DNA from: Mytilus trossulus
Taxonomy: Eukaryota
Direction: 5' to 3'
NCBI RefSeq assembly: GCF_036588685.1
Contig: NC_086382.1
Location: 1,612,001 to 1,676,000, forward strand
DNA: 64,000 nucleotides
The position numbers were made by a program, and so were the translations under genes. The notes under the pieces were generated by a model. The model had not been told where the DNA came from. It made no database searches and worked only from the letters and a program-made list of their open reading frames with translations. Shown in pieces: positions 51,701-63,575 of this stretch (its first letter is position 1; each line of letters starts with the position of its first letter).

Positions 51701-54700
51701 ACCTCCGGACTGATTTTTCTATTAAAAGTATCTTTTGCAAAACGATAATGTCGATTTTAAAAGATTCCAGACATCTAAATCCCCTTTTATTTCCAAAGTT
51801 TGATCACAAAAGTGTTCAGCTTTGTTTTTTAGATGTTAACTGTAATTTCTGAATTTTTGCTCATATGGTATACATATTTCAGATATAAATGAATGTCTGC
51901 CAAATCCATGCAAGCACGGTGCTACATGTGATGATAAAGTGAATGATTACAGCTGCACGTGTTCACCAGGTTACAAGGGAAAGAACTGTGAATTAGGTAG
52001 GATGTCAGATCAAACTAAAATTTTCTTAATGTCAATATTTTACTTTTAGTCTTTGAAATCTTTTTTCTTAGAAAACGACATAAATACAAAAGAGAATAAA
52101 CTAAGGTGACAATTAAATCAGTTTTTTGTAGACAAACAGTCAATACTTTTTAGCCCTTAGGTTTTCAAAGCCAATTACTTTTTTTATAATCAATTAAAAG
52201 AGGAGCTTTAGTTTTACAAGATCCGATCATGTATTCCGAGTTTTGTATCAGGGATATATATTCCTTAGTTTATGAATGTCTTATGTTGAAACAAAACGTT
52301 CTTGCAAACCCTTCAATACTATGTGAAAAAAAATTGATACTTTTTTTTTCTAACCTGTAGATAAATTGACAACTCTAAGAACTCCGAACTTCTTAAAAAG
52401 ATTGTGCAATATTATATCTCCCGACTGATTTTTCTGTCGATATTATCTTTTATATGACGAGTAGATCGACTTTAAAGGATTCTAAAATTCGAGCATGCAT
52501 TGTGTGTTTAAATGTTTAATCACAAAAAACAGTGTTTAGCTTTGTTGTGTTATTGTTAACTGTAATTTTCTGAATTGAGAGCGTGTTGTACATTTCAGAT
52601 ATAAATGAATGTCTGCCAAATCCATGCAAGCACGGTGCTACATGTGATGATAAAGTGAACGATTACAGCTGCACGTGTCCCCCAGGTTACAAAGGAAAGG
52701 ACTGTGAAATAGGTATGATCTCAGATTAAAATCAAAATGTCTTAATGTCAATATTTTTCATTAAGTCTTTGATATCTGTTTCCTTCGAAAACAAAAAATG
52801 AAATACAAAAGTGAATTAACTAAGGGGACAATACAATTTGAATTTGGAAGACGAACTGTCAATACTTTTTAATTTGTAAACTTTCAAAGTGAGTTTTTTT
52901 TAATTAATTCAGAAAGGAGCTTAGTTTTTCCAGATCCGATCAAGTATTACGAGTTTTGTATGAGGGAGATATAATCCTTTAAATTTTCTTATGTAATAAA
53001 CATTGAAACAATAGGTTTTTGCAAACTCTTCAATACCATGTGAAAAAAGTTAAAACGATTTGTCTAAAATGTAGATCAATTGACAACTTTTGAAGCTGTA
53101 AACCCCTTTACACTATTGTGCAATATTTTGCCTCCCGACTGATTTTCAGTCAAGAGTATCTTTTATATGACAAACTGATAGATTTTGAGGATTTGAGAAT
53201 TCAAATGTGCTTTGTTTTTGAATTTTTTTTATTATAAAATCAGTATAATTATGAATTGTAATTTTTGAATGTGTGGACATGTGTTATACATATTTCAGAT
53301 ATAAATGAATGTCTGCCAAATCCATGCAAGCACAGCGCTACATGTAATGATAAAGTGAATGATTACAGCTGCACGTGTCCCCCAGGTTACAAAGGAAAGG
53401 ACTGTGAAATAGGTATGATATCAGATTAAGTTCAAAATGTCTTTATGTCAATATTTTAATTTTATTCTTGGAAAACTGTTTTCTTCAAAAATAATTATCA
53501 TTACATTAACTAGAACAAATATACTCTTTTCATAACAGATATCAACGAATGTAAACCAAACCCTTGTAAACATGGATCATCATGCCTGAATGAGGTGAAT
53601 GGTTACACTTGTGTCTGCAAACCAGGTTACGAAGGAAAGAGATGTGAAATAGGTAATATCATTATCAATATTGGTTTTTCCAACAATTGGTTTATTATGT
53701 GCATTAGATAAGCAGCAATATTGCAATACATAGTATATTTCTATAACAGAAAAATGACTGGCACATAATCTGTTAATCAGAGAGAAAACAAATGTTTAAC
53801 GAACCATAATGAATCAAAAATTCCAAAGAGAATATGCTAAGGGTCCAACAAAAAACGTATTTGGAATACCCTGTGTAAAAGTATTAACGAATTTTTAAAT
53901 TGTATATCAATTGACTACTATTGAAACTTCAAACTCCCTTAATATACTAATATTGTGCAAGATTATGCCTCTCAGATGATTTTTCGAGGAAAAGATTCTT
54001 TCAATTTAAACCTTTCGAGAATTTATGACATGCTTTGTTAAAAAAAAGTTGATTGCAAAATAAGTATTTAGCTTTGTTGCATTATTATAAACTGTGATTT
54101 CTGAATATTTGGACGTATGATATACATATTTCAGATATAAATGAATGTCTGCCAAATCCATGCAAACACGGCGCTACATGTAATGATAAAGTGAACGATT
54201 ACAGCTGCACGTGTGCCCCAGGTTACAAAGGAAGGAATTGTGAAAAAGGTATGGTGTCAGATTAAACTTAAAATGTCTGAATTTTTCGAAAAACTAAGGA
54301 TTTTCTTACCCCAGGAGTAGATTACCTTAGCCGTATTTGGCACAACTTTTTGGAATTTTGGGTCCTCAATGCTCTTCAACTTTGTATTTATTTGGCTTTT
54401 TCAACTATTTTGATCTGAGCGTCACTGATGAGTCTTATGTAGACGAAACGCGCGTCTGGCGTATAAAATTATAATCCTGGTACTTTTGATTACTTTTAAT
54501 GTCAATATTTTACTATTATATTTTAATATGTGTTTTTTTGGAAAAAGATATTAGTACAAAAGAGAATTAACTAAGGTGACAATCAAACCAGTTTTTGGTA
54601 GACAAACATTGAATACTTTTTAGCTCACAGGTTTTCAAAGCCAGGTGCTTTTTTTTTAAATCAATTAAAAAAGGAGCTTTAGTTTTTCAAGATCCGATCA

Positions 54701-63575: not shown

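Follow-up and report, generated by a model that had tools for sequence, protein, structure and literature searches.

The window analysed here is a stretch of 64,000 nucleotides from Mytilus trossulus (contig NC_086382.1, positions 1,612,001 to 1,676,000 of the forward strand), and all coordinates below are counted from its first letter. A scan of this window for the six-cysteine pattern of EGF domains detected 33 EGF exons on the + strand, from position 35976 onward, and none on the - strand; 12 further EGF exons lie within the 10 kb beyond the window. Each of the 33 exons measures 114 nt and is preceded by an AG acceptor and followed by a GT donor. When exons were profile-scanned singly, not as a joined protein (a single exon makes 37 aa), the three exon types of the array described below and the exon flanking it scored 41-47 bits with the Pfam EGF profile PF00008, for a cut-off of 21.5. 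Judging from its sequence, the host gene is a very large multi-EGF gene, and the 33 exons of the window plus the 12 found beyond it show that it evolves through exon duplication. Just past the window (G000:C10), two other copies of EGF exons of the same gene, L003:1184-1279 and L003:9148-9243, appear to lack working splice signals: one is devoid of the AG acceptor and the other displays GGAATG instead of the GT donor, so that they are likely dead exons from earlier duplications. In another part of the window a G+C-rich satellite, made of 24 copies of a 107-bp unit (19219-21782, 91% matching), accounts for the G+C peak (0.42-0.49) observed at 18-22 kb.

Between 53413 and 62340, on the + strand, repeat search and unit alignment reveal five tandem units whose pairwise identity is 99.5-99.8%. 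They begin at 53413, 55199, 56985, 58771 and 60555 and measure 1786, 1786, 1786, 1784 and 1786 bp respectively; the start-to-start spacings given by the repeat search over 53.2-62.5 kb are 1786, 1786, 1786/1785 and 1784-1786 bp. The five units announced by the first-pass annotation are thus present, but not all have the 1,786 bp it gave them, the fourth having undergone two 1-nt deletions. As the longest period considered by Tandem Repeats Finder (500) is below the length of the unit, the array had to be located by another repeat search, and the units were delimited for alignment at the boundaries proposed in that annotation. Any two units differ by 3-9 mismatches, and overall 16 columns of the alignment are variable, with patterns specific of each unit. 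These 16 differences speak against a pure artefact and in favour of units that are genuinely distinct copies.

On its left the array adjoins the EGF exon that we call X (53299-53412), the 3' end of which is the left crossover partner discussed below. Each unit contains, as had been described, three 114-nt EGF exons on the + strand, recognized by their AG acceptor, GT donor and six-cysteine pattern. Exon B lies at 53539-53652 in unit 1 (41.3 bits with PF00008 and 29.4 bits with EGF_CA), and at 55325-55438, 57111-57224, 58897-59010 and 60681-60794 in units 2-5. Exon C, which shows the six-cysteine pattern and matches PF00008, occupies 54135-54248, then 55921-56034, 57707-57820, 59493-59606 and 61277-61390; exon A', identified by the same two features, occupies 55085-55198, then 56871-56984, 58657-58770, 60441-60554 and 62227-62340. 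The exons of the five units show two differences only, both non-synonymous: a Thr/Met difference in exon C (units 2 and 4) and a change in exon A' that gives unit 4 Gln in place of His; the window positions concerned are 54210, 55996 and 59568 for exon C, and 60463 for exon A'.

Every unit also carries one type I hammerhead ribozyme on the sense strand, intact and identical from one unit to the other. In unit 1 it spans 54419-54462, with a cut after 54456, and starts 170 nt after the donor at 54249, exactly the distance roughly estimated before. In units 2-5 it is found at 56205-56248, 57991-58034, 59777-59820 and 61561-61604, with cuts after 56242, 58028, 59814 and 61598. The 32-nt core of the motif is matched exactly at 54425, 56211, 57997, 59783 and 61567, for 0 matches expected by chance. 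This catalytic core is conserved, with CUGANGA, GAAA and the cleavage triplet GUC in the type I order, and all its positions match. With the Rfam model Hammerhead_1 (RF00163) the motif aligns over model positions 1-45 of 45 and obtains 33.0 bits (E = 1.1e-6 in a search of 301 nt). The gathering score of this model being 34, a scan of the whole window at the gathering threshold gives no match: the hammerhead, 1 bit under, is visible in the E-value scan only. Three solo hammerheads occur elsewhere in the window, at 5615-5658 (-), 7271-7314 (-) and 31648-31691 (+), with Rfam scores of 33.0, 27.5 and 32.5 bits; their cores, at 5621 (-), 7277 (-) and 31654 (+), have diverged from that of the array, the copy at 7277 by the core change CUGAUCA, and the core of the copy at 31654 is identical to that of a published clone of M. 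galloprovincialis.

Folding indicates that the motif can form a helix I of 6 bp, a helix II of 3-4 bp and a helix III of 2 bp when the hammerhead is alone, or 8 bp in a dimer. The hammerhead shape of a lone copy is predicted at -4.4 kcal/mol, versus -10.0 for a misfold. Two copies folded together are predicted to form a double hammerhead at -31.5 kcal/mol, versus 2 x -10.0, with an intermolecular helix III of 8 bp provided by the palindrome ACGCGCGU. The plain single-strand fold of the motif is no better than that of shuffled sequences (z = 0.83), which is expected for a hammerhead of the dimer type. Metazoan type I motifs whose helix III is short and palindromic are prone to dimerize within tandem repeats (PMC4209133); the cofold prediction agrees with this literature, so that the label “dimer-type” seems reasonable. 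The first-pass annotation had read the motif as a hammerhead of the kind met in retrozymes and Penelope-like elements (PLE), and as a dimer-type one: the 2-bp helix III and the palindrome agree with the former, and the predicted double hammerhead with the latter.

The hammerhead does not stand alone in its intron. It belongs to an insert of about 218 nt, 179 before the cut site and 39 after, which extends from 54278 to 54495 in unit 1 and from 56064 to 56281 in unit 2 (213/213 identical); the family alignment places it at 57850-58067, 59636-59853 and 61420-61637 in units 3-5. M. galloprovincialis harbors a non-LTR retrozyme composed of repeats of ~350-390 bp, yielding abundant circRNAs (Cervera & de la Pena 2020, PMC7229834). 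In the genome under study (1.30 Gb) the hammerhead core has at least 18,401 exact matches (9,327 forward and 9,074 reverse, for 0 with a reversed control pattern), many of them in long runs spaced by 354-359 bp. About 220-228 nt of the insert align at 92-99% to the tandem retrozyme monomers of this same genome, and a 213-nt query taken from this intron finds copies without any difference (100% identity) on several other contigs. Compared with the M. galloprovincialis clone, the core of the array differs by 1 nt, in loop 2, and the body upstream is visibly homologous. From the abundance of the core, the identity to monomers and the homology with the published clone, the insert is a truncated solo copy of a known Mytilus-type non-LTR retrozyme. 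It represents ~61% of a monomer of ~355-359 nt: where a complete element would be a short tandem repeat of ~170-400 nt flanked by two hammerheads, we find one hammerhead in ~218 nt, so that the insert is a fragment and not a functional retrozyme, and its hammerhead nothing special to the EGF locus. At two other places of the genome, G000:C1:161827-163968 and C1:1435358-1436405, the cores are ~1,055 and ~1,016 bp apart, i.e. about three monomers; these are probably arrays whose intervening ribozymes have mutated.

Three paralogous introns of the same gene do not contain the insert. In the intron that follows exon 51883-51996, already pointed out as the empty site, the + strand sequence 52020-52040 is uninterrupted, the insertion point falling between 52025 and 52026; in the intron following exon 52596-52709 it falls between 52741 and 52742 (+), and the third empty intron lies downstream of the window. 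This indicates that the insertion occurred after the older exon duplications and before the five-fold amplification, which is the order that had been proposed. Given these three empty introns and the 100% identity with other copies of the family, the insert can be considered as young.

The point of exchange was placed by aligning the left edge of the array, its inner junctions and its right edge. The last difference between exons X and A' is at 53400, and the last unit first departs from the inner junctions at 62348; the exchange thus took place between 53400 and 53420, in a crossover window of 19 nt (53401-53419 on the + strand, equivalent to 62329-62347) covering the end of the exon and its splice donor. 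This is ~1,040 nt away from the cut site of the ribozyme, in keeping with the caveat, made at the outset, that the boundaries map to EGF-exon homology and look like the outcome of unequal crossing-over. A genome search with the unit-specific intron (54500-55084) finds near-identity in the five units of the array only; its diverged relatives (72-86%) are confined to this contig, where they rarely lie more than ~10 kb from the array, and nowhere else in the genome did we find the 1,786-bp unit. A seamless, in-register array lying between homologous exons, with no dispersed copies, points to unequal crossing-over at the DNA level. We also considered an RNA-mediated (rolling-circle) amplification, and discarded it on account of the in-register crossover in exons and of the lack of dispersed copies; likewise, the route from RNA cleavage to circularisation and reverse transcription does not fit the signature of the array. 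In a retrozyme having captured exons, the unit should end at the cut site or have copies elsewhere: here it ends in an exon and has none.

The explanation that we retain, and to which we give about three chances in four, is that the hammerhead is a passenger on an exon block copied by unequal crossing-over, with a small effect on the gene. A solo truncated copy of the retrozyme, of ~218 nt and with one hammerhead, would have landed, in sense orientation, in an intron of the multi-EGF gene. Two paralogous 114-nt EGF exons would then have undergone unequal crossing-over, which duplicated a 1,786-bp block comprising three exons and their introns, and further unequal exchanges among the copies would have led to the five assembled units, the ribozyme being simply carried along. 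Its RNA probably self-cleaves slowly, either alone or as a dimer, the palindromic helix III joining it to another copy in cis or to the abundant retrozyme RNA in trans; most introns should be spliced before being cleaved, and the effect on the gene is likely small. The anatomy of the array, the family membership of the insert, the order of events, the position of the crossover and the absence of the unit elsewhere are established directly. That the hammerheads have a weak effect on the gene, or none, is what we infer.

At the typical speed of Pol II, the 628 nt that separate the cut site from the next exon are transcribed within tens of seconds. A mussel clone with a single hammerhead self-cleaves co-transcriptionally at ~0.1/min (PMC7229834). 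Such a rate, i.e. a half-time of ~7 min, would be slow relative to the transcription of these 628 nt; and an earlier study saw no change of splicing with slow intronic ribozymes, whereas fast ones aborted it (Fong 2009, as cited in PMC10919898). The same clone, which differs from the array core by 1 nt only, makes doubtful the former proposal that a lone copy would be nearly silent: a lone hammerhead probably is not, even if dimers formed in trans in the test tube are possible for this clone. Besides, mussel tissues contain very large amounts of retrozyme RNA (PMC7229834) and the helix III palindrome is common to the family, so that partners in trans should exist regardless of the local number of copies. 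We nevertheless observe that some points are less easily reconciled with inert passengers. With five intact hammerheads in sense orientation, cleavage of the pre-mRNA is chemically possible; as the predicted double hammerhead is stable, extra copies could raise the activity; and a study of Xenopus, a vertebrate, reports retrozymes as depleted from introns, which suggests that genic copies are not always neutral. Our conclusion is that the hammerheads are carried as passengers and that any attenuation they cause is small.

Several other readings have to be weighed against this one, of which the most serious concerns the number of units. Five copies might not be the general state, but result from an over-expansion of the assembly or from a private or polymorphic allele, the common state being possibly one to three units; we consider this as a possibility to be kept in mind, with the odds against it. 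It was approached through the contigs assembled from sequencing runs, whose depths are crude and which may come from other individuals or species. In DNA run X1, the depth is 162-180 for every one of the exact contigs that the assembly contains 2, 3, 3, 3 and 5 times, and ~55 for a flanking haplotype contig; for DNA run X2 it is 15.5-17.9 whether a contig is found 1, 4 or 5 times in the assembly, versus 8.4. The depth of contigs does not scale with the assembled copy number, X2 being suggestive of a single unit per haplotype and X1 of some three haploid equivalents. The five-copy state may thus be private, polymorphic or partly a product of the assembly. On the other hand, the 16 unit-specific differences are unlike what a collapsed or artificially repeated sequence would give, and the three haploid equivalents or so of X1 still indicate an amplification. 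As for the insertion, contigs of both X1 and X2 begin within the insert, 26 nt from its 3' end, and continue into the intron, a hint of a shared filled site, but with an overlap below the 31-nt bridging rule. Words of the filled-site 3' junction are present in contigs of runs whose labels name two organisms.

Less favoured is the idea of an attenuator depending on the dose, in which each hammerhead would cleave a few nascent transcripts so that more units would give somewhat less full-length mRNA, an effect mildly deleterious or neutral and in no way designed. A half-time of ~7 min (~0.1/min), set against the tens of seconds that typical transcription takes over 628 nt to the next exon, makes it rather unlikely. 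In its favor, expression is reduced by intronic ribozymes when they are fast, and the Cpeb3 ribozyme, also in an intron, has a measurable modulating effect on the mRNA of its host gene (PMC10919898); the depletion reported in Xenopus introns goes in the same direction.

We give very little credit to a more elaborate scheme, according to which, in tissues where the EGF gene is expressed, successive sense hammerheads cut the pre-mRNA and a tRNA ligase seals circles containing three EGF exons, of 1,786 nt or ~1,178 nt once spliced, the number of units varying between individuals. If true, it would be a natural hybrid joining a retrozyme array to a cassette of host exons. The junction of such a circle would be identical in sequence to the tandem junction of the genome. 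In RNA runs, 0.10-0.15 of the query words are recovered, from other copies of the retrozyme family and from short pieces made of exon only. In RNA run X19 the retrozyme part is covered with 8-10% differences, i.e. by other members of the family, next to short exon-only pieces, and the contigs provide no coverage of the unit-specific intron; this pattern is compatible with spliced EGF mRNAs and uninformative on cleavage.

Finally, the first-pass annotation had imagined that amplification supplies partners in cis, the pre-mRNA being cut every 1,786 nt into linear or circular three-exon RNAs, or the number of EGF triplets being tuned, in a ribozyme-tuned protein-length system or an exon-capturing retrozyme. 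Formally, the layout is what a retrozyme array would show if its monomer were longer, every unit has its intact sense hammerhead, a double hammerhead is predicted and short palindromic helices III are known to favour dimers in tandem repeats (PMC4209133), but beyond this layout the proposal finds no support and is hardly credible: the edges of the array are in exon homology and not at the cut site, the unit is absent from the rest of the genome, the near-identical published ribozyme is slow, the partners, separated by 1,786 nt, belong to distinct introns which splicing can remove independently, partners in trans are already abundant so that their supply requires no amplification, two other samples show no sign of the five-copy state in the depths of their contigs, and RNA contigs cover just exons and other copies of the retrozyme family.

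If the hammerheads are indeed passengers, the array has nothing extraordinary: retrozymes insert and exons duplicate in tandem very actively in this genome, and the array is a by-product of both. Its main use would then be as a natural dosage series, with one to five sense hammerheads in otherwise near-identical introns, with which one could measure, in an invertebrate, whether splicing or mRNA yield responds to intronic hammerheads that are slow and dimer-prone. The array also has a bearing on the reasons why retrozymes are reported to be depleted from introns.

Among known systems, the closest is the retrozyme of M. galloprovincialis (PMC7229834): apart from the single nucleotide of loop 2 the core is the same, the upstream body is homologous, and here too the genome contains tandem arrays of ~355 bp, with thousands of copies. 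By contrast the EGF locus has ~61% of a monomer and a single hammerhead, in a host intron and with a spacing of 1,786 bp instead of ~355 bp, and no circle can be excised from one insert. The dimeric type I hammerheads of newt satellite 2, of PLE and of other metazoan repeats (Forster 1988, as cited in PMC4209133) share the short helix III, the palindromic loop and the intermolecular helix III that we predict. However, the partners of the EGF array are not adjacent but 1,786 nt apart in separate introns, and the mussel motif, with its 2-bp helix III, is reported as active from a clone with one hammerhead.

The vertebrate intronic ribozymes HH9 and HH10 and the HDV-like ribozyme of CPEB3 (PMC10919898) are likewise sense ribozymes in introns of protein-coding genes, where cleavage might compete kinetically with splicing. 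These are single and deeply conserved, and the rate of the Cpeb3 ribozyme is matched to a distance of ~10 kb; that of the EGF array belongs to a very young fragment of a transposon, and the next exon is 628 nt away. At the level of the host gene, the array resembles the tandem exon duplications that unequal crossing-over produces in multi-EGF genes, which have symmetric phase 1-1 exons: the 114-nt exons are in frame, the crossover occurred inside paralogous exons, and the array is seamless and in register. The only unusual trait is that one of the duplicated introns had just received a retrozyme fragment.
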